Shown here in pieces: positions 27,940 to 63,200 of a DNA stretch of 64,000 nt. Source of the stretch: Schizochytrium sp. TIO01 (Eukaryota; Protista; Bigyra: Labyrinthulomycetes); assembly GCA_004764695.1 (NCBI GenBank), contig SMSO01000034.1, positions 1,922,001 through 1,986,000 on the forward strand. Direction: 5' to 3'. A model generated the notes under the pieces. That model searched no databases. It was not told where the DNA came from and saw only the letters and a program-made list of their open reading frames with translations. Each line of letters opens with the position of its first letter. The stretch's first letter is position 1. Both the position numbers and the translations under genes were made by a program.

Positions 27940-30900
27940 TTATTCCAATCTAAAGTTTGCGACAACAATATCTGGTGTTAGCAAAGGCGACAATAACTCT
28001 TTCAAAACGAGTCGAAGATTTCTATCCTGAATTTTGGCATTCCAGTACTCACGCAGACGTTCTGCGCGGAGCAACTGCCACGCCTCACGAACCTGCTCAA
28101 AAGAATCAGCAAAAAATGGATCTTGCCCAAGTCTTCTTGAACAGGTTCTCACATGATCATGACATGCATCTTCATCCTGAGAACTGTAGCCAAGACACCA
28201 AGCGCAGAAGTGATGACCACAAGTCTCATTACCACACTCTACAGCACAGCAACCGTAAAAATCGTGTACATATGCCTTACAGTTCGGACAACATGTGCTC
28301 AAGATCTTCTCTTGAATATGAAGTAAATGAAGCCGTGCGTCGCGATTCTGTTCATCAGCACGTAAAACTTGTGCTATGCGCCTTTGGATCTCCTTCTCCG
28401 CCCACACTGCTGCTTCATTTTCTGCCTTCATCTTCGCAATCAACAATAGGTGATTCAAAGCAGTTGGTGCAAGACGGGTGATTTCTTGACCTGATATCCT
28501 TCCACTACATTCAGGTTTCATGCATGCCATCGTTCCATCAGCATCCACCCTTACGTTAGCAAGTGGCCGTGCCGCCGCTTCTACTGAAGATTCGATACAG
28601 TCTCTGCAAAGGAAGTCTCCCTCCTCGCAGCTCGTGCCCTCGGAAAGCAGACGCTCCTCCATGCATACTAGACATATCTTGACAGGGATCTTAGGAGCTC
28701 CAAAAGCTTCATGTTGGAGTGCTTGGCGAGCGGTTGGACGCTGGCCAGGGTCTGTTGCTGTAAGAGCATCGATAAGTTTCTGCATTGCAGCGGTTCGCTC
28801 AGTAGGATACAGCTCCTTTAAGCTTATGCCCACAGAGTACATATCCATCGCTGTTTCAAACCTATCTACAGGCCCATTCTGCAACTCGGGGGCAACGTAC
28901 CGTGGCGTTGCTTGAAGTGATGTGTAAGTTGCAGTGTAGTCTGCATTCTTGATGCCGTCAAAGTCGCCGATCAATGGTGTCCCGTTACTTGTGAGGAAAA
29001 TGTTTTCTGGTTTGATGTCACAATGCACAATGCCATGGGTATGTAAATCCGCCACGCCGATAAGCAGACCCATAGCAAGTCGGTCGCGTGCTGCTTTGCT
29101 TTCGTTAGGATGACTCTCAATCCACTTGGCAAGGTCACCTTGCTCGTAGAAAGGCATGACGATACAACCACGCGGTACTCCATGTGCCAGATCAACAAAA
29201 GCACCATTGATACGTATCACGTGCTGAGACACCACTTTGCCCAGATTCGCAACTTGTCTGTAGAAGGTTTTAGATTGACTTGAATGTCCAAGCTGAAACT
29301 CTTTTAGAACCATAGTTTTACCATCTCCATCAAATACTTTCTGGACTCTCTTGCCAACTCTGGAAGCAAGGGGCTCGCCGAGAGGCTTGAAGTCCGAAAC
29401 TGTGACATTCGTCAACCAAAGGTCAGAACATGCTACTTCAAAAACACCCTCTGCACTTACGTGAAGCCTTTCCAGCCAGGCTCTATCTTGCAGCAACTCT
29501 GGATAATGTTCCTGCGCGTGTTGCAGAGTTTCAGCAAGCTTATGACGAAAAGCTTTGCTAAGATCGATAGGGTTGCCTTGAGAGAGAATGAGCTCTTGTT
29601 TTCTGATACGATTTCTAAAATATGCTTGATCTTCCTCATCCATGTCCTCTATTTCGAGTTCTTCGTTGGCTCTCTTCAAAATTTCTGTGGCTATCCTCGA
29701 CTTGTCAAGTTTCTGGTATAATTCTTCAACATCTGAGACAGAAGGTTCTTTCAAACCCAGTACTGCATAGTCATACAGCTCAGAGAGCTCTTTTGGTGTG
29801 TAATTGCTCGCGTCATTCAACGTAGCACTCTCAGAGTATCCTTCAAATCGAGCAAATGTTGAACTTATCGCGCAAAATATTTTGGACAAGTGGGCACGAA
29901 GTGTATCTCCTTGTAGAGCTTTGATCTCTTCCTTGAGAGCACTCTCAAGTTCAGACAACTCGGGTTCTAGCTCCATGGCCTGCTCGGGTGATCTCAGAGC
30001 AACCGATAATCCATCACCAAGTTCTAGCTCAGACAATCGAGAGATGACGCGTTTTACAGCTTGTTGGCTTCGTTCACCAATGTTGTTGAGTTGGTCTTCT
30101 CCACTCCTTTTGTACCCTTCCACGCATTGGCCAGCCTGAATAACGAGTTCTTGGCAGTGTTTGAAGTCATCTGTGATGGTCTCTTCATCGACTGGAGCAA
30201 GGTTGATCTTTAGATCGTTTACCAAACTTTCAACTCTCTCTTTGAATTCTCGCACTGCACTCTCATCACTTTCACAAAGATTGGCGCGAACCCATGGGTA
30301 CACAACCTGCAAAAGTGAATACAGGTACCTCCGTTCGGTGTTCCGCTTTTCGATGAGGCTGGCCAAGCCATCAGCAGAGCTTGCACGAATCTGGCCTTGT
30401 CGCACGTCAAGACTCTCTTTGGAGTTCTTGATGTCAGCGAAAACCTGTCGCAACTTTACTTGGCCAAAGTAGCCCTGGATCGCCGGTCGAACGAATTCCT
30501 CAAGCAGGGCAATCCCAGTCTGCAGGGAGTTTCCTCTGACCCCACCTCGGTCCGCGCGCAAGTCCGAGACTTTCTTGGCAAGCTGCACCACATCAGCAAA
30601 ACTCACGCTCGCTCCATCCGGCCGTTCTCTGAGGCGAACAAGAAGACGTAAGCAAACGAGCAAAATGGTGTTGAAGCAGTAATAAAGGCAAAAGCAAAAG
30701 TTAGGATACCCTCTATCTCAATAACACAATTCGTGGAATGAATAATTACACGATCCCAAACAAAGACTGACCGCATGAACTTACCCAGATCCATCCAAAG
30801 TAGCAAGCCCGGCGCTCTCATCGCCATCTTGCTCGTTCTTGGGCTCTGCAGAAGGCTCGCTTTCTGCAGTCTCTATGGAAGCATAGGAATCGAGCTCTGA

Positions 30901-33900
30901 CGAGAAATCTGCAATGTCCTCTCCAGGAGAACACACCCTTTCGAACAATCGTTTAGGGGTTCCAGAAAAATTGTCATAGCTGCATTTGATAAATCAATGA
31001 ACGAAAGAAAGAGAATAAAAGCGCTTGTTAGAAAAACGATGCACGCAACTAAAGACGGCCTCGCAAGTCCATATGGAGACATGGAGAGAACCATAGAAGG
31101 CAAGGTTCTGCGCAAGCTGGGAATACCAGCAGAGGAAACGGAACTTACTAGATTTGAACAGAAGGACATGCTTTGTGCAGAGACTTTGCGACGGCCTTTG
31201 CGCCCTCCGAGCCAATGTCGTTGTTACGAAGACTGTGAGTATAAATGAATAAGTTTGTTTTATTCATTCGTTGTCAGGAAAGACAGGTCCAGTCAGTTGA
31301 TCCTGTTTTGTTTTGTTTTCCCTCACAATAAAAAGCAATCAGCTCTTCTTCTGCTGCTGCTGCTGCCTAGTATCAAATTATATAGATTTCTTTCTTCTCT
31401 TTGTAAAAAAGAAAAGACTTCTTTGCCTTTCTTTGCGTACCCAACTACGTAAACTACTTAGGTAGTGTACCAGCAGCACTACAAACACCAAGCACTAAAA
31501 ACAAAGAAAGAAAAAGCTTGGTCCTGACTATTACGATAGCTTTCCCTCGTGGATGATTCCACAAACGTACCCAAGTTTAGTCAGGTTCTTGCATCCCTCG
31601 AGTGCCTTTGCGACGGCCTTTGCGCCCTCTGAGCCAATGTCGTTGTTATTAAGACTGTGAGTATAAATGAATAAGTTTGTTTTGTTCATTCGTTGTCAGG
31701 AAAGACAGGTCCAGTCAGTTGATCCTGTTTTGTTTTGTTTTTCCTCACAATAAAAAGCAATCACCTCTTCTTCTTCTGCTGCTGCTGCCTATCAAATTAT
31801 ATAGATTTCCTTCTTCTCTTTGTAAAAAAGAAAAGACTTCTTTGCCTTTCTTTGCGTACCCAACTACGTAAACTACTTAGGTAGTGTACCAGCAGTACTA
31901 CAAACACCAAGCACTCAAAAGAAAGAAAGAAAAAGCTTGGTCCTGACTATTACGATAGCTTTCCCTCGTGGATGATTCCACAAACGTACTATAATTGTTG
32001 AAGGTTCTTGCATCCCTCGAGTGCCTTTGCGACGGCCTTTGCGCCCTCCGAGCCAATGCCATTCTCCTGAAGACTGTGAGTATAAATGAATAAGTTTGTT
32101 TTGTTCATTCGTTGTCAGGAAAGACAGGTCCAGTCAGTTGATCCTGTTTTGTTTTGCTTTTCCTCAATAAAAAGCAATCACCTCTTCTTCTGCTGCTGCT
32201 GCTGCCTATCAAATTATATAGATTTCCTTTTGCCCTTCCTTCTTCTCTTTGTAAACTAACCAACTACGTAAACTACTTAGGTAGTGTACCAGCAGTACTA
32301 CAAACACCAAGCACTAAAAAGAAAGAAAGAAAAAGCTTGGTCCTGACTATTACGATAGCTTTCCCTCGTGGATGATTCCACAAACGTACGCTAAAAATTG
32401 AAGGTTCTTGCATCCCTCGAGTGCCTTTGCGACGGCCTTTGCGCCCTCCGAGCCAATGTCGTTGTTATGAAGACTGTGAGTATAAATGAATAAGTTTGTT
32501 TTGTTCATTCGTTGTCAGGAAAGACAGGTCCAGTCAGTTGATCCTGTTTTGTTTTGTTTTTCCTCACAATATAAAGCAATCACCTCTTCTTCTGCTGCTG
32601 CGTATCACATTATATAGATTTGCTTTTGCGCTTCCTTCTTCTCTTTGTAAAAAAGAAAAGACTTCTTTGCCTTTCTTTGCGTACCCAACTACGTAAACTA
32701 CTTAGGTAGTGTACCAGCAGTACTACAAACACCAAGCACTAAAAACAAAGAAAGAAAAAGCTTGGTCCTGACTATTACGATAGCTTTCCCTCGTGGATGA
32801 TTCCACAAACGTACGCTAAAATTTGAAGGTTCTTGCATCCCTCGAGTGCCTTTGCGACGGCCTTTGCGCCCTCCGAGCCAATGTCGTTGTTATGAAGACT
32901 GTGAGTATAAATGAATAAGTTTGTTTTGTTCATTCGTTGTCAGGAAAGACAGGTCCAGTCAGTTGATCCTGTTTTGTTTTGTTTTTCCTCACAATAAAAA
33001 GCAATCACCTCTTCTTCTTCTGCTGCTGCTGCCTAGTATCAAATTATATAGATTTCCTTCTTCTCTTTGTAAAAAAGAAAAGACTTCTTTGCCTTTCTTT
33101 GCGTACCCAGCTACGTAAACTACTTAGGTAGTGTACCAGCAGTACTACAAACACCAAGCACTGAAAAGAAAGAAAGAAAAAGCTTGGTCTTGACTATTAC
33201 GATAGCTTTCCCTCGTGGATGATTCCACAAACGTACCCAAGTTTAGTCAGGTTCTTGCATCCCTCGAGTGCCTTTGCGACTGCTTTTGCGCCCTCTGAGC
33301 CAATGTCGTGCCCACCAAGACTGTGTTTGTTTGTTTGTTTGTGAACAAGTGAGATTTGTTTTGTTCATTCGTTGTCAGGAAAGACAGGTCCAGTCAGTTG
33401 ATCCTGTTTTGTTTTGTTTTTCCTCACAATAAAAAGCAATCAGCTCTTCTTCTTCTGCTGCTGCTGCCTATCAAATTCTATAGATTTCCTTCTTCTCTTT
33501 GTAAAAAAGAAAAGACTTCTTTGCCTTTCTTTGCGTACCCAACTACGTAAACTACTTAGGTAGTGTACCAGCAGTACTACAAACACCAAGCACTAAAAAC
33601 AAAGAAAGAAAAAGCTTGGTCCTGACTATTACGATAGCTTTCCCTCGTGGATGATTCCACAAACGTACACTAAAGTTTGAAGGTTCTTGCATCCCTCGAG
33701 TGCCTTTGCGACGGCCTTTGCGCCCTCATCGCCAATGTTGTTGTTGTCAAGACTGTGAGTATAAATTCATTCGTTGTCAGGAAAGACAGGTCCAGTCAGT
33801 TGATCCTGTTTTGTTTTGTTTTTCCTCACAATAAAAAGCAATCACCTCTTCTTCTGCTGCTGCTGCTGCTGCCTATCAAATTATATAGATTTCCTTCTTC

Positions 33901-35256
33901 TCTTTGTAAAAAAGAAAAGACTTCTTTGCCTTTCTTTGCGTACCCAACTACGTAAACTACTTAGGTAGTGTACCAGCAGTACTACAAACACCAAGCACTA
34001 AAAACAAAGAAAGAAAAAGCTTGGTCCTGACTATTACGATAGCTTTCCCTCGTGGATGATTCCACAAACGTACTGTAAAGATTGAAGGTTCTTGCATCCC
34101 TCGAGTGCCTTTGCGACGGCCTTTGCGCCCTCATCGCCAATGTTGTTATACTGAAGACTGTGAGTATAAATGAATAAGTTTGTTTTGTTCATTCGTTGTC
34201 AGGAGAGACAGGTCCAGTCAGTTGATCCTGTTTTGTTTTGGTTTTCCGCACAATAAAATCAATCACCTCATCTTGTGCTGCTGCCTATCAAATTATATAG
34301 ATTTCGTTTTGCCCTTCCTTCTTCTCTTTGTAAAAAAGAAAAGACTTCTTTGCCTTTCTTTGCGTACCCAACTACGTAAACTACTTTAGGTAGTGTACCA
34401 GCAGTACTACAAACACCAAGCACTCAAAAGAAAGAAAGAAAAAGCTTGGTCCTGACTATTACGATAGCTTTCCCTCGTGGATGATTCCACAAACGTACTG
34501 TAAAGTTTGAAGGTTCTTGCATCCCTCGAGTGCCTTTGCGACGGCCTTTGCGCCCTCATCGCCAATGTTGTTCTCAGAAAGACTGTGAGTATAAATGAAT
34601 AAGTTTGTTTTGTTCATTCGTTGTCAGGAGAGACAGGTCCAGTCAGTTGATCCTGTTTTGTTTTGGTTTTCCGCACAATAAAATCAATCACCTCATCTTG
34701 TGCTGCTGCCTATCAAATTATATAGATTTCGTTTTGCCCTTCCTTCTTCTCTTTGTAAAAAAGAAAAGACTTCTTTGCCTTTCTAAAGTACCCAACTATG
34801 TAAACTACGTAGGTAGTGTACCAGCAGTGCTTTCGTTTTGATTCCTTTCCCCTAGTACCAACACCACTCAAAATAAAGAAAGAAAAAGCTTGGTTCTGCC
34901 TGTTTCGATAGCTTTCTCTCGTGGATGATTCCACAAACGTACTACAATTTTTGAAGGTTCTTGCATCGCTCGAGTGCCTTTGCGACGGCCTTTGCGCACT
35001 CATCGTTAATGTCGTGCCCACCAAGACTGTGTTTGTTTGTTTGTTTGTGAACAAGTGAGAGTAAGTATATGCCATTTCCAACTTCTTCATGAGTGCCACT
35101 ACTAGTACAAAACTATTCTTCTTCTACAAAGCTGACTACTACAACACATCGACGACGCGATGCCTCCTTCTTCTGTCTCCTCCCTTCTGCATCGTGCACC
35201 TACCGAATCTCCGTCGTATCTTCTCTGATGTCCTCAATTTTGCTTGCCGTAGTCAT
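27940..35256 (-). CDS. 13-exon gene, predicted 1258 aa: 10 RI/NLR-type LRRs, linker/helical region, Ser/Thr kinase, RING, RBR-type (IBR/Rcat-like) Cys-His domain
   Basis: Manual GT-AG model with all introns phase 2 and an open frame throughout. Exons: 35204-35256 (MTTASKIEDIREDTTEI); 84-nt LRR exons 34943-35026, 34499-34582, 34074-34157, 33669-33752, 33237-33320, 32815-32898, 32390-32473, 31990-32073, 31571-31654, 31149-31232; then 30785-30979 and 27940-30628. Kinase motifs VLKE, HCDIKPEN, DFD, APE. RING CLVC...CEEGDFLCRDC...CMKPEC. C-terminal CPNC...GCCAVEC...CGHHFCAWC. Confidence 0.88.
31149..35026 (-). repeat. Tandem array of ~420-bp units, each an 84-nt LRR exon plus a 316-360-nt near-identical intron
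   Basis: Ten exons and nine repeated introns. Donors GTACGTTTGTGG and acceptors ACAG recur in each unit. Confidence 0.95.
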
Positions 35257-36510: not shown

Positions 36511-36629
36511 AACATTCAACACCGGGGCTTCGCATGCAGTCCCCTATCATACTACTGACCCGGCCCTACGCGACTTTACTTCTCAGTGCGAATGAGATGA
36601 GGTGTTACCCGCGTGGTATGATCGAATGT
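36511..36629 (-). rRNA. 5S rRNA
   Basis: Identical by eye to 23987-24105, with different flanks and a T-run terminator. Confidence 0.95.
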
Positions 36630-50939: not shown

Positions 50940-53900
50940 AACAAGCAGTTGATGGATCCTCACAAGGGACAATATTTCATTAACCACTAAAGATATTAAT
51001 GTTGCACAAGTATCATCAGAAAGCTTCCGAAATTTGCAACATGTTGAAGTATTTGTTTCTGAGAAAACACATCTCCCATGTGTTTTTACTGACCTTTGAA
51101 AGTTATTTCTTGGTCTCTCATATTATTAATAGGGGGAGGGAAACGAGTTTAGTAGTGTTGTAACTCTATGCATATAATAGATAGAACTTTGCTACAAGCA
51201 TCGTCGGATAGCTGAATAATAGTTAAAGTGGGTGCATTTGATTTATGAGAGAAACTCTTCTTGCAAGCCTGAGAAAAGAAGCTCTAAGTTGCCACTCTAT
51301 TTGTGAGCAGCAAAATGATTAGTATAAGGTTCATTTTCTCAACAACGGGGGAAGATATTAATCATCAGGTGGTACCGTTGGAAAGCTGTTAAGATTCACA
51401 ACAGGGTAGATGTGTTTTCTCAGGCGAAATGTTTTAAAAAATTATTTTTACTGACCTTTGAAAGTTATTTCTTAGTCGCCCATATCATTAATAGGGAGAA
51501 AGAACTGAGTTTAGTAATGCTCTAACTCTATGAATAGAATAGAAAGGACTTTGCTATAGGCACCCATTGATAGAACATGAATAGCTGAGATGCTCGAATT
51601 TGATTTGTGAGAAAAAAGACCCTGTCAAGCTTGAGAAAAGAAGCCCCAAGTTATCATTCTGTTTGTGAGCAGGACAGAGAATTAAATGGTTAGTATAAGA
51701 TTCACTTTCTTAAAATAGGATAGTATATTAATTATTGAAGTGTACCATTGGAAAGCTGGTTGAATTTACAACAGATTGAATGTGTTTTCTCAGAAAAAAT
51801 ACTTTTAACATGCATTTTACTGACCTTTAAAAGTTATTTTTTTTGTCTCTCATATTATTAATAGGGGGAAGGAACTGGGTTAGTAGTGTTGTATCTCTAT
51901 AAATACAATCGACAGAGCTTTTCTACAAACATCATTCGATAGTTTATGAAGTGTTAAGATGAGAGCATTTGATTTATGAGAATAAATGTTCTTGCAAGCT
52001 GGAGAAAAAAAGCCCCAAGTTGTCACTCTATTTGTGAGCAGGATAGAGAATTGAACGGCTAGCATAAAATTGATTTTCTCAACACCGGGGAAAGATATTA
52101 ATCATGGAGGGGTACCGTTGGACAGCTGGGGCAATTTACAACGGGGTTGAGGTGTTTGCTTAGCTGAAATATTCTTAAAATGTGTTTCTACTGACCTTTG
52201 AAAGGTTATTTTTGGTCTCTTATATTATTAATAGGGGGAGGGAACCGAGTTTAGTAGTGCTTTAACTCTATGAGTAGAGTAAGCAGAACTTTTCTAGAAG
52301 CATCGTTCGATAGCGCATAAATTGTTGAGATGAGTGCATTTGATTTATGAGAGAAAAGCTTCTTGCAAGCTTGAGAAAAGAAGCTCTAAGTTGTCACTCT
52401 ATTTGATAACAAAAGAAATAAATAAGTGATTAGTATAAGATGCATTTTCTCAACAACGGGAAAATATATAAATCATGGAGTGGTACCATTGGAAAGCTGC
52501 TTGAAATTACAACAGGGTAGATGTGATTTCTCAGAAAAAATACTTTAAACATATAGTTTTACTGACCTTTAAAAGTTTACTTTTTTGTCTCTCATATTAT
52601 TAATAGGGGGAAGGAACCGACTTTAGTAGTGTTTTAACTCTATGAGTAGAGTAAGCAGAGCTTTTCTAGAAGAATCATTCGATAGCGCATGAATTGTTGA
52701 GATGGCCGCATTTGATTCATGAGAGAAAATCTTTTTTCAAATTTGAGAAAAGAAGCTCTAAGTTGTTACTCTATTTGTTGGCAGGATAAAGAATAAAATG
52801 ATTAGTATAGGATTAATTTTCTCAACGATGAAGCAATATATTAATCATGGAGGGGTACCGTTGGAAAGCTGATGCAATTTACCACAGGGTAGATGTGTTT
52901 GCTCAGGTGAAATAGTATTGAAATGTTTTTTTACTGACCTTTGAAAGTTTATTTTTGGTCTCTCATATTATTAATAGGGGAAGGAAACCAAGTTTAGTAG
53001 TGATCTAACTCTTTGAGAAGAATAAACAGAACTTTTATGGAAGAACCAATCGATAGGAAATTAATTGCTGAGATGTTCGCATTTAATTTATGAGAGAAAT
53101 TCTTCTTGCAAGCTTGAGAAAAGAAGCTCCAAGTTGTCACTCTATTTTGTGAGCAGGACAGAGAATTAAATGGTTAGTATAAGATTCATTTTCTCAACAA
53201 TGGAGTAATATATTAATCATCGAGTGGTACCGTTGGAAAGCAGTTTTCATTTGCAACAGGGTAGATGTGTTGGTTCAGAAAAAATAAAATTTAAAGTATG
53301 TTTTATTGACTTTTGAAAGACATTTCTTAGTCTCCCATATTATTAATAGGGGGGAGGAACCGAATTTAGTAGTGTTCTAACTCTATGAGTAGAATAAGCA
53401 GAACTTTTCTAGAAGAACCACTGGATAAGGCATGGATTGTTGAGGTGGCCTCATTTGATTTATGAGAGAAAATCTTCTTTTAAGTTTGAGAAAAGAAGCT
53501 CTAAGTTGTTACTCTATTTGATAACAAAAGAAATAATTAAAAGATTTGTACAAGATTCATTTTCTCAACAACGGGGAAACATATAAATCATGGAGTGGTA
53601 CCATTGGAAAGCTGCTTGAAATTGCAACAGGGTAGATGTAATTTCTCAGAAAAAATACTTTAAACATATAGTTTTACTGACCTTTGAAAGTTTATTTTTG
53701 GTCTCTCATATTATTAATATGGGGAAGGAACCGAGTTAGTAGTGTTTTAACTCTATGAGTAGAGTAAGCAAAACTTTCCAAGAAAAACCACTGGATAAGG
53801 CATGGATTGTTGAGGTGGCCTCATTTGATTCATGAGAGAAAATCTTTTTTCAAGTTTGAGAAAAGAAGCTCTAAGTTATTACTCTATTTATTAGCATGAT

Positions 53901-56460
53901 AAAGGGTAAATTGAATAGTATAAGATTCAGTATCTCAACTATGAGATAATATATTAATCATCCAGTGGTACCATTGGAAAGCGGCTTGAATTTACAGCAG
54001 GGTAGATGTGTTTTCTCCGAAACAATACTTTAAACATATAGTTTTACTGACCTTTGAAAGTTTATTTTTGGTCTCTCATATTATTAATAGGGGAAAGGAA
54101 CTGGGTTTGGTAGTGTTCTAACTTTATCAATAGAATTGACAGAGCTTTACTACAAGCACCATTCGATAGCTCATGAATTGTTAAGATGCGTGTATTTGAT
54201 TTACGAGAAAAACTCTTCTTGCAAGCTTGAGAAAACAAGCTCCAAGTTGTCACTCTATTTGTGAGCAGGATAAAGAATTAAATGACCAGTATAAACTACA
54301 TTTTCTTATCAACAGGGAAAGATATAAATCATGGAGGGGTACCGTTGGAACCCTGGTGCAATTTGCAACAAGATAGACGTGCTGCTTTAGAAAAAATAAA
54401 TTAATATTATGTTTTTTTTACTTTGAAAGTCATTTCTTAGTTTCTCATATTATTAATAAGGAGAAAGAGCTGAGTTTAGTAGTGTTCTAACTCTATGAAA
54501 AGAAAAACCAGAAATTTTCTAGAAGAACCACTCGATAGCCCATTACTTGTTGAGATGACTACATTTGATTCATGAGAGAAAAGCTTCTCGCAAGCTTGAG
54601 AAATGAAGCTGGAGGTTATCACTCTATTTGTTAGCAGGACAGAGAATAAATTGTTTAGTATAAGACTCATTTTCTCAACAACGGGGAAAGATATTAATCA
54701 TGGAATGGTACCGTTGGAAAGCTGTTTCAATTTACATTAGGGAAAATGCCTTGATTTAGAAAATAAAATAACGATTATGTTTTTACTAACCTTTAAAAGA
54801 TATTTTTTGGTCTCTTATACTATTAATATGAAAAAAGAACTGAGTTTAGAAGTGTTGTAACTCTATACAAAGAATGAACAAAACTTTTCTCCAAGCATCA
54901 CCCGGTAGTGGAATAAGTGTTGATACGTCCGCATTTGAGTTATGAGAAAACTTCTTCTTGCAAGCTTCAGTATAAAGCTCCAAGTTGTTACTCTATTTGT
55001 TAATAGAACAAGGAATAAAATGATTAGTATAAGACTCATTTTCTCAACAACAAGGATAGATATTAATCATGGAGTGGTACCGTTGGAAAGCTGTTTCAAT
55101 TTACATTAGGGTCAATGTCTTGATTTAGAAAAATAAAATTATGATTATGTTTTTACTGACCTTTGAAATTTATTTTTTGGTCTTTCATATTAATAATAGT
55201 GTTAAGGGGCTATAAAAAGGCGTGACTAATGACCACTCGTCAATACCTAGTATACCCCGGTCCCATATATAGATTATCTCTTGACACCCCCCCATTCTCT
55301 GGGCGAAAGGTTCATATTTCGGTTAGAGACTGATTCGACATCCCAGCAGGAATAGGACACCCCTACCCCCCAGTAAGTCCTTCTTTTTCCAGGCACTTAC
55401 ATCATGGGGGGATCGAACCCGGGACCAACATACGGCAACTCTATCTCCTAGAGTTTCAGCTATTTGACTCTTAATCTGTTAAGGGGCTATAAAAAGGCGT
55501 GACTAATGACCACTCGTCAATACCTAGTATACCCCGGTCCCATATATAGATTATCTCTTGACAAATAGGGGGAAGTAACCGAGTTTAGTAGTGTTCTAAC
55601 TTTATCAATGTAATAGCCAGAGCATTACTACAAGCACAATTCGATAATTCATGAACTGTTAAGATGCGTGCATTTGATTTATGATAAAAAATATTCTTGC
55701 AAGATTGAGACAAAAACATCAAACTGTCACTCTATTTGTTAGCAGGATATAAAACAACATGTTTAGTACAAGATCAATTTTCTCAACAACAGGGTCATAT
55801 ATTAATCATCGAATGGTACCCTTGAAAAAAAGCGCCAATTTGCAACAGGTAAAATGCGTTTGCTAAGAGAAATAAAAATTTTATTTATGTTTTTACTGAC
55901 TTTCAAAAGTTATTTCTTAGTTTTTCATATTAATATTAAGGAGAAGGAACCGAGTTTAGTAGTGTTTTAACGCAATCAAAAACGTAGGTAGAACTTTTCC
56001 ACAAGAACCACTCGGTCGCTCGTTCATGGCTAAGATGGACACATTTGATTGATGAGAGGAAATCTTCTTGCCAGCTACAGGGAACAGGTCTTAGTTATCA
56101 CTATAATGGTTAGCAGGCCATAGAATTAAATGGTTAGCATAAGATTCATTTCCTCAACAAATGAGTCACCTATTAATCATCGAATAGTACTATCGGAAAG
56201 CTGCTGAACTGTACGACAGGAAACCTATCTTGATTAAGAAAACTTAGAATTCTATTCAAGTTTTTATTGACTTTGAAAGTTATTTCTTAGTTTCTCATAT
56301 TTCTAAGAACGAGAACAGGAAAACTTTGAAGTGTCATAACTCTATCAATAAAAAAGGTAGAACTTTTCTACAAGCACCACTAGAACGCTTCACAACTCAT
56401 CAACGATCAACACTGAATTGTGGTGAAAAAATAGTTCTACAAATTAGACAAAGGACTTCC
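50940..56460. repeat. Subtelomeric repeat family 3 (~14 diverged copies of ~370 bp); fits the rDNA-telomere spacer repeats described as LORE-TEARS in Aurantiochytrium
   Basis: Marker CTGACCTTTGAAAG or variants at about 51089, 51451, 51820, 52191, 52562, 52934, 53306, 53677, 54047, 54420, 54786, 55156, 55896, 56267. Confidence 0.93.
55200..55563 (-). mobile_element. TRIM (miniature non-autonomous LTR element), 364 bp
   Basis: Identical 87-bp TG...CA LTRs (55200-55286, 55477-55563); TSD AATAG; PPT AGAGAATGGGGGGG (minus); 190-bp non-coding interior. Confidence 0.93.
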
Positions 56461-56634: not shown

Positions 56635-57009
56635 TAGGTAGGTTAGGTTAGGTTAGGTTAGGTTAGGTTAGGTTAGGTTAGGTTAGGTAGGTTAGGTTAG
56701 GTTAGGTTAGGTTAGGTTAGGTTAGGTTAGGTTAGGTTAGGTTAGGTTAGGTTAGGTTAGGTTAGGTTAGGTTAGGTTAGGTTAGGTTAGGTTAGGTTAG
56801 GTTTAGGTTAGGTTAGGTTAGGTTAGGTTAGGTTTAGGTTAGGTTAGGTTTAGGTTAGGTTAGGTTAGGTTAGGTTAGGTTAGGTTAGGTTAGGTTAGGT
56901 TAGGTTAGGTTAGGTTAGGTTAGGTTAGGTTAGGTTAGGTTAGGTTAGGTTAGGTTAGGTTAGGTTAGGTTAGGTTAGGTTAGGTTAGGTTGGGGTTAGG
57001 TTAGGTTAG
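56635..57009 (+). repeat. Telomeric repeat (TTAGG)n
   Basis: ~375-bp tract with rare TTTAGG/TAGG variants; G-rich strand points away from the rDNA. Confidence 0.98.
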
Positions 57010-57010
57010 N

Positions 57011-57285
57011 ACCTAACCTAACCTAACCTAACCTAACCTAACCTAACCTAACCTAACCTAACCTAACCTAACCTAACCTAACCTAACCTAACCTAACCTA
57101 ACCTAACCTAACCTAACCTAACCTAACCTAACCTAACCTAACCTAACCTAACCTAACCTAACCTAACCTAACCTAACCTAACCTAACCTAACCTAACCTA
57201 ACCTAACCTAACCTAACCTAACCTAACCTAACCTAACCTAACCTAACCTAACCTAACCTAACCTAACCTAACCTAACCTAACCTA
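57011..57285 (-). repeat. Inverted telomeric repeat (CCTAA)n after a single N
   Basis: Perfect CCTAA tract; N at 57010. Confidence 0.97.
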
Positions 57286-60200
57286 CTATCATTCATCTAA
57301 CCTTACCTATTATTATACATTATATTTATTAATGATTTTACAATAAAAAGTTTAATGAAGAATTTAAAATATTTTCTTTCAAAAAATTAAAAAGATTTTA
57401 TGCGCCTGCTGACATTCGTGGATATGGGAGACTTCAATAAGAACAGTATATAATATGATGGAAGTCCTTTGTCTAATTTGTAGAACTATTTTTTCACCAC
57501 AATTCAGTGTTGATCGTTGATGAGTTGTGAAGCGTTCTAGTGGTGCTTGTAGAAAAGTTCTACCTTTTTTATTGATAGAGTTATGACACTTCAAAGTTTT
57601 CCTGTTCTCGTTCTTAGAAATATGAGAAACTAAGAAATAACTTTCAAAGTCAATAAAAACTTGAATAGAATTCTAAGTTTTCTTAATCAAGATAGGTTTC
57701 CTGTCGTACAGTTCAGCAGCTTTCCGATAGTACTATTCGATGATTAATAGGTGACTCATTTGTTGAGGAAATGAATCTTATGCTAACCATTTAATTCTAT
57801 GGCCTGCTAACCATTATAGTGATAACTAAGACCTGTTCCCTGTAGCTGGCAAGAAGATTTCCTCTCATCAATCAAATGTGTCCATCTTAGCCATGAACGA
57901 GCGACCGAGTGGTTCTTGTGGAAAAGTTCTACCTACGTTTTTGATTGCGTTAAAACACTACTAAACTCGGTTCCTTCTCCTTAATATTAATATGAAAAAC
58001 TAAGAAATAACTTTTGAAAGTCAGTAAAAACATAAATAAAATTTTTATTTCTCTTAGCAAACGCATTTTACCTGTTGCAAATTGGCGCTTTTTTTCAAGG
58101 GTACCATTCGATGATTAATATATGACCCTGTTGTTGAGAAAATTGATCTTGTACTAAACATGTTGTTTTATATCCTGCTAACAAATAGAGTGACAGTTTG
58201 ATGTTTTTGTCTCAATCTTGCAAGAATATTTTTTATCATAAATCAAATGCACGCATCTTAACAGTTCATGAATTATCGAATTGTGCTTGTAGTAATGCTC
58301 TGGCTATTACATTGATAAAGTTAGAACACTACTAAACTCGGTTACTTCCCCCTATTTGTCAAGAGATAATCTATATATGGGACCGGGGTATACTAGGTAT
58401 TGACGAGTGGTCATTAGTCACGCCTTTTTATAGCCCCTTAACAGATTAAGAGTCAAATAGCTGAAACTCTAGGAGATAGAGTTGCCGTATGTTGGTCCCG
58501 GGTTCGATCCCCCCATGATGTAAGTGCCTGGAAAAAGAAGGACTTACTGGGGGGTAGGGGTGTCCTATTCCTGCTGGGATGTCGAATCAGTCTCTAACCG
58601 AAATATGAACCTTTCGCCCAGAGAATGGGGGGGTGTCAAGAGATAATCTATATATGGGACCGGGGTATACTAGGTATTGACGAGTGGTCATTAGTCACGC
58701 CTTTTTATAGCCCCTTAACACTATTATTAATATGAAAGACCAAAAAATAAATTTCAAAGGTCAGTAAAAACATAATCATAATTTTATTTTTCTAAATCAA
58801 GACATTGACCCTAATGTAAATTGAAACAGCTTTCCAACGGTACCACTCCATGATTAATATCTATCCTTGTTGTTGAGAAAATGAGTCTTATACTAATCAT
58901 TTTATTCCTTGTTCTATTAACAAATAGAGTAACAACTTGGAGCTTTATACTGAAGCTTGCAAGAAGAAGTTTTCTCATAACTCAAATGCGGACGTATCAA
59001 CACTTATTCCACTACCGGGTGATGCTTGGAGAAAAGTTTTGTTCATTCTTTGTATAGAGTTACAACACTTCTAAACTCAGTTCTTTTTTCATATTAATAG
59101 TATAAGAGACCAAAAAATATCTTTTAAAGGTTAGTAAAAACATAATCGTTATTTTATTTTCTAAATCAAGGCATTTTCCCTAATGTAAATTGAAACAGCT
59201 TTCCAACGGTACCATTCCATGATTAATATCTTTCCCCGTTGTTGAGAAAATGAGTCTTATACTAAACAATTTATTCTCTGTCCTGCTAACAAATAGAGTG
59301 ATAACCTCCAGCTTCATTTCTCAAGCTTGCGAGAAGCTTTTCTCTCATGAATCAAATGTAGTCATCTCAACAAGTAATGGGCTATCGAGTGGTTCTTCTA
59401 GAAAATTTCTGGTTTTTCTTTTCATAGAGTTAGAACACTACTAAACTCAGCTCTTTCTCCTTATTAATAATATGAGAAACTAAGAAATGACTTTCAAAGT
59501 AAAAAAAACATAATATTAATTTATTTTTTCTAAAGCAGCACGTCTATCTTGTTGCAAATTGCACCAGGGTTCCAACGGTACCCCTCCATGATTTATATCT
59601 TTCCCTGTTGATAAGAAAATGTAGTTTATACTGGTCATTTAATTCTTTATCCTGCTCACAAATAGAGTGACAACTTGGAGCTTGTTTTCTCAAGCTTGCA
59701 AGAAGAGTTTTTCTCGTAAATCAAATACACGCATCTTAACAATTCATGAGCTATCGAATGGTGCTTGTAGTAAAGCTCTGTCAATTCTATTGATAAAGTT
59801 AGAACACTACCAAACCCAGTTCCTTTCCCCTATTAATAATATGAGAGACCAAAAATAAACTTTCAAAGGTCAGTAAAACTATATGTTTAAAGTATTGTTT
59901 CGGAGAAAACACATCTACCCTGCTGTAAATTCAAGCCGCTTTCCAATGGTACCACTGGATGATTAATATATTATCTCATAGTTGAGATACTGAATCTTAT
60001 ACTATTCAATTTACCCTTTATCATGCTAATAAATAGAGTAATAACTTAGAGCTTCTTTTCTCAAACTTGAAAAAAGATTTTCTCTCATGAATCAAATGAG
60101 GCCACCTCAACAATCCATGCCTTATCCAGTGGTTTTTCTTGGAAAGTTTTGCTTACTCTACTCATAGAGTTAAAACACTACTAACTCGGTTCCTTCCCCA

Positions 60201-63200
60201 TATTAATAATATGAGAGACCAAAAATAAACTTTCAAAGGTCAGTAAAACTATATGTTTAAAGTATTTTTTCTGAGAAATTACATCTACCCTGTTGCAATT
60301 TCAAGCAGCTTTCCAATGGTACCACTCCATGATTTATATGTTTCCCCGTTGTTGAGAAAATGAATCTTGTACAAATCTTTTAATTATTTCTTTTGTTATC
60401 AAATAGAGTAACAACTTAGAGCTTCTTTTCTCAAACTTAAAAGAAGATTTTCTCTCATAAATCAAATGAGGCCACCTCAACAATCCATGCCTTATCCAGT
60501 GGTTCTTCTAGAAAAGTTCTGCTTATTCTACTCATAGAGTTAGAACACTACTAAATTCGGTTCCTCCCCCCTATTAATAATATGGGAGACTAAGAAATGT
60601 CTTTCAAAAGTCAATAAAACATACTTTAAATTTTATTTTTTCTGAACCAACACATCTACCCTGTTGCAAATGAAAACTGCTTTCCAACGGTACCACTCGA
60701 TGATTAATATATTACTCCATTGTTGAGAAAATGAATCTTATACTAACCATTTAATTCTCTGTCCTGCTCACAAAATAGAGTGACAACTTGGAGCTTCTTT
60801 TCTCAAGCTTGCAAGAAGAATTTCTCTCATAAATTAAATGCGAACATCTCAGCAATTAATTTCCTATCGATTGGTTCTTCCATAAAAGTTCTGTTTATTC
60901 TTCTCAAAGAGTTAGATCACTACTAAACTTGGTTTCCTTCCCCTATTAATAATATGAGAGACCAAAAATAAACTTTCAAAGGTCAGTAAAAAAACATTTC
61001 AATACTATTTCACCTGAGCAAACACATCTACCCTGTGGTAAATTGCATCAGCTTTCCAACGGTACCCCTCCATGATTAATATATTGCTTCATCGTTGAGA
61101 AAATTAATCCTATACTAATCATTTTATTCTTTATCCTGCCAACAAATAGAGTAACAACTTAGAGCTTCTTTTCTCAAATTTGAAAAAAGATTTTCTCTCA
61201 TGAATCAAATGCGGCCATCTCAACAATTCATGCGCTATCGAATGATTCTTCTAGAAAAGCTCTGCTTACTCTACTCATAGAGTTAAAACACTACTAAAGT
61301 CGGTTCCTTCCCCCTATTAATAATATGAGAGACAAAAAAGTAAACTTTTAAAGGTCAGTAAAACTATATGTTTAAAGTATTTTTTCTGAGAAATCACATC
61401 TACCCTGTTGTAATTTCAAGCAGCTTTCCAATGGTACCACTCCATGATTTATATATTTTCCCGTTGTTGAGAAAATGCATCTTATACTAATCACTTATTT
61501 ATTTCTTTTGTTATCAAATAGAGTGACAACTTAGAGCTTCTTTTCTCAAGCTTGCAAGAAGCTTTTCTCTCATAAATCAAATGCACTCATCTCAACAATT
61601 TATGCGCTATCGAACGATGCTTCTAGAAAAGTTCTGCTTACTCTACTCATAGAGTTAAAGCACTACTAAACTCGGTTCCCTCCCCCTATTAATAATATAA
61701 GAGACCAAAAATAACCTTTCAAAGGTCAGTAGAAACACATTTTAAGAATATTTCAGCTAAGCAAACACCTCAACCCCGTTGTAAATTGCCCCAGCTGTCC
61801 AACGGTACCCCTCCATGATTAATATCTTTCCCCGGTGTTGAGAAAATCAATTTTATGCTAGCCGTTCAATTCTCTATCCTGCTCACAAATAGAGTGACAA
61901 CTTGGGGCTTTTTTTCTCCAGCTTGCAAGAACATTTATTCTCATAAATCAAATGCTCTCATCTTAACACTTCATAAACTATCGAATGATGTTTGTAGAAA
62001 AGCTCTGTCGATTGTATTTATAGAGATACAACACTACTAACCCAGTTCCTTCCCCCTATTAATAATATGAGAGACAAAAAAAATAACTTTTAAAGGTCAG
62101 TAAAATGCATGTTAAAAGTATTTTTTCTGAGAAAACACATTCAATCTGTTGTAAATTCAACCAGCTTTCCAATGGTACACTTCAATAATTAATATACTAT
62201 CCTATTTTAAGAAAGTGAATCTTATACTAACCATTTAATTCTCTGTCCTGCTCACAAACAGAATGATAACTTGGGGCTTCTTTTCTCAAGCTTGACAGGG
62301 TCTTTTTTCTCACAAATCAAATTCGAGCATCTCAGCTATTCATGTTCTATCAATGGGTGCCTATAGCAAAGTCCTTTCTATTCTATTCATAGAGTTAGAG
62401 CATTACTAAACTCAGTTCTTTCTCCCTATTAATGATATGGGCGACTAAGAAATAACTTTCAAAGGTCAGTAAAAATAATTTTTTAAAACATTTCGCCTGA
62501 GAAAACACATCTACCCTGTTGTGAATCTTAACAGCTTTCCAACGGTACCACCTGATGATTAATATCTTCCCCCGTTGTTGAGAAAATGAACCTTATACTA
62601 ATCATTTTGCTGCTCACAAATAGAGTGGCAACTTAGAGCTTCTTTTCTCAGGCTTGCAAGAAGAGTTTCTCTCATAAATCAAATGCACCCACTTTAACTA
62701 TTATTCAGCTATCCGACGATGCTTGTAGCAAAGTTCTATCTATTATATGCATAGAGTTACAACACTACTAAACTCGTTTCCCTCCCCCTATTAATAATAT
62801 GAGAGACCAAGAAATAACTTTCAAAGGTCAGTAAAAACACATGGGAGATGTGTTTTCTCAGAAACAAATACTTCAACATGTTGCAAATTTCGGAAGCTTT
62901 CTGATGATACTTGTGCAACATTAATATCTTTAGTGGTTAATGAAATATTGTCCCTTGTGAGGATCCATCAACTGCTTGTTTAAATAAAGTGATAACTACG
63001 AGCTTCTTTTCGCAAGCTTGAAAACATATTTTTTCGCAGCGATTATGACTATCATGTGGTAACAACGATGCACTTTCCGACGGTTCTTGTCGAAAAGACC
63101 TTACAATTTTATCCAGAAAGTTATAACAGTACTAAGTTTAGTTCTTTCCTCTTATTAATAATATGGAAGAGTAACATTTTCTTTTAAAAGTTCGAAAAAT

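Follow-up and report, generated by a model that had tools for sequence, protein, structure and literature searches.

A tandem repeat with a unit of about 422 bp, found in a 64,000-nucleotide (64-kb) stretch of the Schizochytrium sp. TIO01 genome (contig SMSO01000034.1, positions 1,922,001 to 1,986,000; hereafter the window), is by comparison with its paralogues the exon-intron part of a predicted intact gene of 13 exons, which runs on the minus strand from 35256 to 27940. Its product would be a sensor built of leucine-rich repeats (LRRs), one per satellite unit, followed by a helical region, a protein kinase domain and a Cys/His-rich, RBR-like C-terminal module. According to the explanation that we hold to be probable, although by no means certain, this gene belongs to a germline subtelomeric repertoire whose products are soluble LRR sensors with a kinase and an E3-like module in the same chain, and in which introns and framework codons would be homogenised by ectopic recombination while the concave face of the LRRs would be kept diverse by selection. 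What is new here is the coding interpretation, the DNA repeat itself being already known under the name LORE-TEARS.

In the window, Tandem Repeats Finder delimited 9.1 copies of a 422-425 bp unit at 31184-35015, and a pattern search (CACAG, 84 nt, then GTA(C/A)GT) returned exactly ten 84-nt units on the minus strand, at 31149-35026. The frame is open in all ten, each consisting of 1 base, 27 codons and 2 bases, i.e., of phase 2 on both sides, and each encodes one 28-residue LRR of the ribonuclease-inhibitor (RI) type with the shared reading L-x-x-N-x-I-G-x-E-G-A-K-A-V-A-K-A-L-E-G-C-K-N-L-x-x-L. An earlier note, made from the sequence of the window, had seen ten phase-2 single-LRR exons on the minus strand behind a satellite of ~420 bp; both searches bear this anatomy out, and the nine junction strings that the note listed, from QKLY-LSENN to TKLG-LRNND, were all recovered. 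When single exons (27 aa, half of an LRR_6 profile) were compared with Pfam LRR_6, matches were obtained at E 1e-4 to 1e-2 (16-22.5 bits, for a cut-off of 23.4), and one of the four exons tested gave none. The nine introns of the array (316-360 nt) are 89-99% identical to one another and the exons 71-93%. Within the exons, variability is found at nt 5-15 and nt 72-84, the middle 56 nt being near-invariant, silent sites included, which agrees with what the note had said of the introns and helix codons. LRR exon 7 is 99% identical to LRR exon 6, the sole difference lying in a hypervariable codon, and the two appear to be a recent tandem duplicate. Besides, the last ~35 nt of the intron upstream of LRR exon 5 (to 33354) are a copy of the tail of intron 1, apparently a recombination footprint that would make exon 5 a mosaic unit.

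The note had presented the array as a candidate receptor; the exon array was correct, whereas the larger LRR-kinase-RBR-like gene, of which it is the 5' part, had been missed. The exons were joined by script for length and stop count, junction frames in the paralogues and split codons. The resulting model comprises 13 exons and 12 GT..AG introns, all of phase 2, with a coding sequence of 3,777 nt, 1,258 aa and 0 internal stops. An in-frame stop lies 8 codons upstream of the ATG of exon 1, and this ATG, the 53-nt length without indels and a GTAGGT or GTAAGT donor of phase 2 are conserved in 9/9 sister loci. At the other end of the array, a paralogue of the kinase open reading frame (ORF) at 27943-30717, with roughly 80-95% amino acid identity, lies ~430 nt downstream on the same strand in 20 of 20 sister loci. 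The last LRR exon, the linker exon and this long ORF join with 0 stops in all 17 alignable loci, where the introns before and after the linker measure 169-177 and 149-162 nt, respectively, and are not confined to multiples of 3. Instead, the length of the linker exon is a multiple of 3 in every case (186, 192 and 72 nt in paralogues, besides 195 nt). A TAG at 31149-31147 was considered as the end of the gene and ruled out, because the frame continues through the junctions in 17/17 loci and the GTAAGT donor is conserved, whereas three paralogues have CAG, TCG or TTG where the TAG would be. Splicing of the window gene is predicted from this comparison.

The long last exon holds the putative effector. 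Its helical region, modelled as helices throughout, gave no Foldseek match at E <= 0.001, no Pfam match and no usable ESM Atlas match; resemblances to long helical bundles, ClyA-type toxins included, were non-significant (Foldseek E 0.2-1) and were not used. In the kinase domain, the motifs HCDIKPEN (H535, C536, D537) and GDFDG are invariant in 8 sequences. By these motifs the kinase is of the non-RD type, with Cys for Arg in the HCD loop and DFD replacing DFG, and its catalysis is predicted only. Pkinase was the sole domain that Pfam found in the effector exon, and neither a Roc nor a COR domain was found. A profile search of PDB, made from an alignment with full-length rows, returned mostly kinases, the profile being widened by those rows. 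The C-terminal 256 residues contain invariant Cys/His columns in the family alignment, and their AlphaFold model reached a pLDDT of 71. Foldseek placed RBR or RING E3 ligases on top, led by the RBRs parkin, RNF216 (prob 1.0), HOIL-1L, HHARI and ARIH2. Besides, a Gly-Cys-Cys-x3-Cys stretch, the first Cys of which is missing from paralogue L004, aligns to the Rcat region of parkin and Ariadne, with phmmer E values from 0.09 (parkin) to 1.5. The module is called RBR-like rather than RBR because the Foldseek E is no better than 3e-3 and the phmmer E is 0.09-1.5, and its role as a ligase is putative. The protein is predicted to be soluble and cytosolic, because neither a signal-peptide-like N-terminus nor a membrane-span-like segment was seen in the hydropathy profile. 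Coordinates are collected in Table 1.

Table 1. Parts of the predicted LRR-kinase gene and the flanking 5S rRNA genes, in window coordinates
Feature	Position	Strand	Remarks
5S rRNA gene, upstream flank	36511-36629	-	Rfam RF00001, 96.5 bits
Exon 1	35204-35256	-	ATG, 53 nt coding (17 codons + 2 bases), donor GTAGGT, hydrophilic N-terminus
Intron 1	35027-35203	-	177 nt, GT..AG, phase 2
LRR exon 1	34943-35026	-	84 nt
LRR exon 2	34499-34582	-	84 nt; Pfam LRR_6 E 1e-4
LRR exon 3	34074-34157	-	84 nt
LRR exon 4	33669-33752	-	84 nt
LRR exon 5	33237-33320	-	84 nt; "first-LRR" type 5' block (LGGHD)
LRR exon 6	32815-32898	-	84 nt
LRR exon 7	32390-32473	-	84 nt
LRR exon 8	31990-32073	-	84 nt
LRR exon 9	31571-31654	-	84 nt
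LRR exon 10, divergent capping repeat	31149-31232	-	84 nt; end TA/GTAAGT (slash, exon end)
Nine array introns	within 31233-34942	-	GTACGT...CACAG, phase 2; alternate with LRR exons 2-9
Intron 11	30980-31148	-	169 nt
Linker exon	30785-30979	-	195 nt, acidic/Ser-rich
Intron 12	30629-30784	-	156 nt
Last exon	27940-30628	-	helical region, kinase, Cys/His-rich module, stop codon
Helical region, about 427 aa	29347-30628	-	AlphaFold2 pLDDT 80, all helices
Ser/Thr protein kinase domain	28738-29346	-	Pfam Pkinase E 6e-30
Cys/His-rich C-terminal module, terminal helices and stop	27940-28710	-	RBR-like (RING1-IBR-Rcat-like)
5S rRNA gene, downstream flank	23987-24105	-	Rfam RF00001

Then, the diversity pattern was studied over a family sample composed of the window array and 20 sister loci, i.e., 21 arrays with 163 units, 136 clean exons and 105 complete repeats. 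Exon length was exactly 84 nt in 138 of the 163 units and off by multiples of 3 in 9 more, while the introns ranged from 315 to 370 nt. In the repeat consensus, NLQTLDLSNNNIGSEGAKAVAKALEGCK, L2, L7, G16 and L24 are invariant in 105/105 repeats, while L5, N10 and I12 come close to invariance. Instead, an entropy of 2.6-3.4 bits was obtained for positions 4, 6, 8 and 9 (x3, x5, x7 and x8 of LxxLxLxxNxI), each of which accepts 10-15 types of residue, with D, N, Y, H, G, S, R, Q, E and W well represented. In LRR proteins, the x positions of this motif form the concave sheet. The phase-2 junction falls inside the variable strand, between x5 and L6, and the variation at the x positions straddling it, which the earlier note had read from the window, holds both there and across the family. 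Almost every unit is different, with 97 distinct surface signatures among the 105 repeats and 130 distinct sequences among the 136 clean exons.

A higher variation at exposed codons than in introns had been set by the note as one of the tests of the idea of a diversified receptor, and the difference is large: nucleotide diversity is 0.545 at the four variable codons vs. 0.033 over 335 intron columns, and it falls to 0.009 in the 40 intron bases beside the donor. At the variable codons, non-synonymous (pN) and synonymous (pS) diversity were 0.589 and 0.356, respectively; at the framework codons they were 0.020 and 0.116, giving a framework pN/pS of 0.17. A statistic on same-residue pairs is cleaner than pN/pS: the residue at variable positions differs in 74-90% of repeat pairs, and pairs sharing a residue use a different codon in only 6.4%. 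No stop occurred at the four variable codons in 105 repeats, vs. about 10 expected from per-codon stop probabilities, and only 2 of 160 raw units held a stop, both being frame-shifted. Apart from the third base of L5, the Leu codons between the variable ones are invariant at silent sites, which is illustrated by a third-base diversity of 0.04 for L7 and of 0.00 for L2 (in Q-type blocks, see below). This alternation argues for selection on the surface over regional hypermutation, because variable and invariant codons follow each other at single-codon resolution.

The introns point to exchange between chromosomes. Introns of one array are at a distance of 0.030 from each other, and those of arrays on different contigs at one of 0.033; for 41 of 105 introns the nearest neighbour belonged to the same array, vs. 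5.5% by chance. In the last (effector) exon of the same paralogues, the mean distance is 0.084, with a diversity of 0.063, 0.053 and 0.135 at the three codon positions. This exon is under purifying selection and the array is homogenised about four-fold more strongly than its third positions, because these codon-position diversities stand against an intron distance of ~0.03. Array copy number varied from 4 to 11 units in the fetched stretches, and two-unit tandem duplications were found in three sister loci (L008, L012 and L014). Besides, two haplotype classes can be told apart among the 3' blocks, Q-type and T-type, which are marked by linked synonymous differences and found across chromosomes.

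Among the sister loci, L017 (G000:C23:30000-39999), L019 and L009 lie on small contigs, and most of their units are 1-2 bases off 84 nt; L017 includes a run of N, and these three may be decaying copies or carry homopolymer errors of the assembly. In L001, L003, L004, L005 and L014 (e.g., L001:5439, plus strand), a poly-G tract replaces the usual intron end before some units, and seven units of these loci were measured as 99-nt exons (84 + 15), possibly encoding a 33-residue repeat, with approximate boundaries. A search of the conserved introns for known RNAs gave nothing at the Rfam gathering score; a small nucleolar RNA or other known RNA was not supported, the best candidate being a mir-92-like hairpin with E 0.11. 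This hairpin (33093-33170, minus strand) recurs in each array intron, and the intron as a whole folds slightly better than its shuffles (z -2.1); that it might act as a small RNA or as a structure is conceivable, though unsupported.

The genome searched comprises 64 Mb in 37 contigs. As proposed in the earlier note, which had rightly placed the host among the thraustochytrids, sister arrays were sought at other chromosome ends through the intron sequence, and they are abundant: intron 32474-32814 has at least 333 genomic matches at 90-97% identity, mostly near contig ends. The gene family counts about 40 copies, in the subtelomeric ribosomal DNA (rDNA) spacers of a genome of the Aurantiochytrium limacinum type. 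In the window, the LRR-kinase gene sits between two consecutive 5S genes, with rDNA operons on either side (7978-13520 and 42464-47980). An earlier publication of the DNA repeat had escaped the note: LORE-TEARS "Group 5" of Aurantiochytrium limacinum is a ~421-bp tandem unit which, in subtelomeric rDNA, separates one 5S rRNA gene from the next (Collier et al., bioRxiv 10.1101/2023.06.15.545109). The window array fits Group 5 by unit size and position, as described in the preprint rather than by sequence comparison. LORE-TEARS were called spacers without GenBank similarity and proposed to serve in chromosome-end maintenance, and the words "leucine" and "LRR" are absent from the text of the preprint (bioRxiv 10.1101/2023.06.15.545109). 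Hence, what the preprint places in one repeat class is read here as the exons and introns of a coding gene. As far as this coding nature is concerned, the note's impression of novelty stands, no account of it having been found in the preprint or in the other literature searched, where the term LORE-TEARS was not met and two later Aurantiochytrium papers make no mention of LRR proteins.

Several other elements of the window touch this setting. At 38620-39400 on the plus strand, three further divergent RI-type LRR units occur (e.g., L-D-D-N-T-I-G-S-K-G and L-G-N-N-N-I-D-N-K-G). They occupy the interval from the 5S gene to the next 18S gene, where the preprint puts its Group 0 repeats, were not detected as a tandem repeat, and may represent a second, older LRR gene or a relic. 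Head-to-head telomere repeats of the TTAGG type, (TAGGT)x75 followed by (ACCTA)x55, were found at 56635-57285, flanked by mirror-image arrays of a 371-bp unit (51084-55199 and 58721-62842) in which a regular-expression scan detected no LRR-like frame. Two chromosome ends seem to be joined there telomere to telomere, by an assembly join or a real fusion, and a sister LRR-kinase gene (L001) lies on the far side. At 997-4605 on the minus strand, a 1,202-aa pol ORF of the Ty1/copia type (RVT_2 E 2e-34, integrase core, SH3-like) contains an in-frame tandem repeat of 51 bp x 9.6 at 2893-3380, and its region is bracketed by telomere-like runs of GGTTA x 5 at 934-959 and 6543-6568. Finally, four tRNA genes are clustered at 14308-17464 (plus strand), just downstream of the first 28S gene.

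The exon design and domain order of the window gene are also met in a gene for which transcription is documented. Protein P0164, from the MMETSP0960 transcriptome, has its last exon at G000:C13:1153892-1156618 with 99% identity, and its LRR region is encoded as one repeat per 84-nt exon (cag/N...NN/gtaagt, slashes marking the junctions), with the phase and register of the window array. The same organism thus transcribes and splices a gene of this design, because the transcript-derived P0164 maps at 99% with one LRR per 84-nt exon. P0164 and P0016 (1,240-1,243 aa; G000:C13:1151748-1156618) share with the window gene the LRR_6 repeats (E 1.4e-33 for P0016), the helical region, the kinase and the Cys-rich tail, as well as a short first exon, single-LRR 84-nt exons of phase 2 and one long last exon. 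They differ in that the effector is 39% identical, the introns of about 85-190 nt are not satellite-like, and the gene is single-copy at 99% identity. Besides, an exhaustive profile-free search found the helical-kinase-Cys-rich module as the C-terminus of many longer proteins, behind N-termini of LRR_6, ankyrin, ankyrin plus LRR, or WD40 repeats; the sources of such proteins (P0015, P0018, P0028, P0031 and P0039) include Hondaea fermentalgiana and the dinoflagellate Durusdinium. Repeat-sensor kinase-ligase proteins would thus form a wider family, of which a limited literature search found no description. A metagenome scan with the family alignment returned one distant kinase fragment only.

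These observations can be combined as follows. Exchange between chromosome ends, by ectopic recombination, gene conversion and unequal crossing-over, would keep introns and framework codons near-identical genome-wide, while selection would keep x3, x5, x7 and x8 different in nearly every repeat and gene, the outcome being a germline-encoded repertoire of recognition surfaces. We infer that a crossover in the homologous introns would alter the number of repeats in frame and join new half-strands, because all introns are of phase 2 and split the variable beta-strand. A ligand bound on the LRR arc would presumably switch the fused kinase and E3-like module. The earlier note had presented the array as one that diversifies, by recombination or splicing; the recombination footprints are indeed present, whereas no sign of somatic diversification was seen, the germline gene being complete and the diversity lying among the ~40 germline paralogues.

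Some points weigh against such a repertoire of sensors. A search of protein collections with the effector exon yielded nothing above 70% identity, relatives P0001-P0003 standing at 56-59%, even though the single-copy paralogue from the transcriptome of this organism is included there; the Group 5-type subfamily may therefore be weakly expressed or silenced in culture. About 11 of the 163 units, mostly on small contigs, are off by 1-2 nt, perhaps as pseudogenes or through errors of the assembly. Concerted evolution violates what dN/dS-type tests take for granted, and the third base of L5 (TTA/TTG), which is synonymous and beside a hypervariable codon, is variable too. The C-terminal module resembles RBRs weakly, with a best Foldseek E of 3e-3, TM values of 0.2-0.3 and a Pfam IBR_2 E of 6.7. 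As for the role of non-self or immune sensor, it is suggested by architecture alone.

The missing transcript-derived protein and the 1-2 nt indels would suit a different reading, in which the repeats are non-coding chromosome-end elements, as in their publication as spacers with a proposed part in chromosome-end maintenance, or decaying pseudogene arrays in which the LRR frame is a relic. We consider this very unlikely, since the exon is fixed at 84 nt while the introns span 315-370 nt between conserved splice sites, since near-saturated codons of 105 repeats contain none of the roughly ten stops expected, and since variable codons alternate one by one with invariant Leu and Asn codons; in addition, 17/17 loci are open through three junctions into a kinase ORF under purifying selection. 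Even less credence is given to a targeted mutation of the hypervariable codons, e.g., a local hypermutation at exon ends, in place of selection. The confinement of variation to two short islands beside the splice sites and the variable third base of L5 within an island would be expected from it. However, the Leu and Asn codons between the variable ones are invariant even at silent sites, the lowest diversity of all (0.009) is that of the intron bases directly beside the islands, and each residue is nearly always written with one codon, as if a limited set of selected variants were spread by recombination. A regional hypermutation or a mechanism like that of diversity-generating retroelements was set aside on the invariant intervening codons and the quiet abutting intron.

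Other possibilities concern the use of these genes rather than their existence. The same genes might have a role unrelated to pathogens, in self/non-self recognition (mating, vegetative incompatibility), in the control of mirusviruses or transposons, or in the chromatin of rDNA and telomeres. Their location within rDNA spacers at nearly every chromosome end would suit such a role, as would the persistent mirusviruses of the host, and none of the data specifies a ligand. Instead, a repeat sensor joined to an enzymatic effector, with a non-RD kinase and a hypervariable concave face, is an established pattern of innate immune receptors, and the brown-algal analogues discussed below are read as immune receptors too; a non-pathogen role is therefore rather unlikely, yet it deserves to be kept in mind. 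It is improbable that diversification also proceeds within an individual lineage, through skipped or alternatively spliced exons, in the manner of brown-algal ROCO genes and DSCAM, or through frequent mitotic recombination between subtelomeres, as for the variable lymphocyte receptors (VLRs) and the variant surface glycoproteins (VSGs). The means for it would be at hand: the array exons are symmetric (phase 2-2, 84 nt), which means that skipping or crossover keeps the frame, the introns are ~97% identical over ~340 nt within and between arrays and form an ideal recombination substrate, recent duplications and a mosaic unit are present, and Ectocarpus is reported to splice its single-LRR exons alternatively. 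However, the footprints observed are equally explained by recombination over evolutionary time, and the germline gene is complete, unlike the incomplete VLR locus.

The closest known system is that of the brown-algal LRR-ROCO genes, of which the window family is not a member. In Ectocarpus and Saccharina, these genes encode one LRR per 72-nt phase-2 exon; their exons are shuffled and alternatively spliced, and the concave face is under positive selection (Zambounis et al. 2012, PMC3341825; Teng et al. 2024, PMC11378527). Both families belong to stramenopiles and consist of candidate immune receptors with single-LRR phase-2 exons, a variable number of repeats and a diverse concave face. The exon is one of 72 nt (24-aa LRR) in brown algae, whereas it is one of 84 nt (28-aa RI-type LRR) here, and the effector is a ROC-COR GTPase there and a kinase with an RBR-like module here. 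Furthermore, exon and intron together form here, unlike in brown algae, a 422-bp satellite homogenised genome-wide in subtelomeric rDNA spacers. Alternative splicing is documented for the brown-algal genes, whereas the window family is known from DNA only.

Likenesses to other systems are more partial. In the vertebrate NLRs, the LRRs of the ribonuclease inhibitor/NLRC3 type likewise repeat every 28-29 residues, an LxxLxLxxNxI strand being followed by an amphipathic helix, and have exon boundaries in register with the repeats; however, the NACHT/NB-ARC domain of these proteins is not present in the window gene, where a kinase and an RBR-like effector are found instead, in a subtelomeric multigene family of a protist. 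In plant R-gene clusters, hypervariable solvent-exposed residues of the xxLxLxx motif go together with sequence exchange between paralogues, and the window family likewise combines strand-residue diversity with recombination between paralogues. Unlike here, plant LRRs are not encoded one per exon, have no satellite-like introns and belong to other LRR classes with other effectors. The lamprey VLRs use LRR cassettes as units of diversity, as here, and the Plasmodium var and trypanosome VSG genes, too, are variant repertoires placed in subtelomeres, where ectopic recombination is favoured. This resemblance is one of logic only, as no sign of somatic assembly, of an incomplete germline gene or of mutually exclusive expression was seen; indeed, the window gene is open from ATG to stop, whereas somatic assembly of the VLR type starts from an incomplete germline gene. 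Finally, PINK1 and parkin are a kinase and the RBR-type ligase that it activates in one pathway, and parkin is one of the proteins that the C-terminal module matched best in structure. Here both would be in one chain behind an LRR sensor, and the analogy is a functional one, the RBR-like module being putative.

A bolder extension of the preferred repertoire can be imagined, although we regard it as doubtful. The ~40 LRR-kinase-RBR-like genes might constitute an "anticipatory" recognition system of a protist, in which the near-identical introns at chromosome ends would recombine continually, perhaps in the course of clonal growth and perhaps with expression restricted to few copies, and thereby yield new surfaces on ecological time scales, exon skipping adding isoforms. 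If true, variable LRR receptors would have a third origin, besides those of the lamprey VLRs and the brown-algal ROCOs, and one built into the rDNA/telomere architecture.

If the reading as a germline repertoire of sensors holds, chromosome-end repeats of a model thraustochytrid published as "non-coding" would be the exons and introns of a large and intact protein family. This family would offer an unusually clean case of concerted evolution and diversifying selection side by side, at single-codon resolution (~0.03 vs. ~0.55). The sensor hypothesis is directly testable, because Aurantiochytrium carries persistent mirusviruses and is genetically tractable. Besides, a heterotrophic stramenopile would share the brown-algal design of one LRR per exon, with LRRs of another class and with a kinase and RBR-like ligase as a new effector, which suggests that modular immunity, based on repeat sensors and enzymatic effectors, may be widespread in protists.

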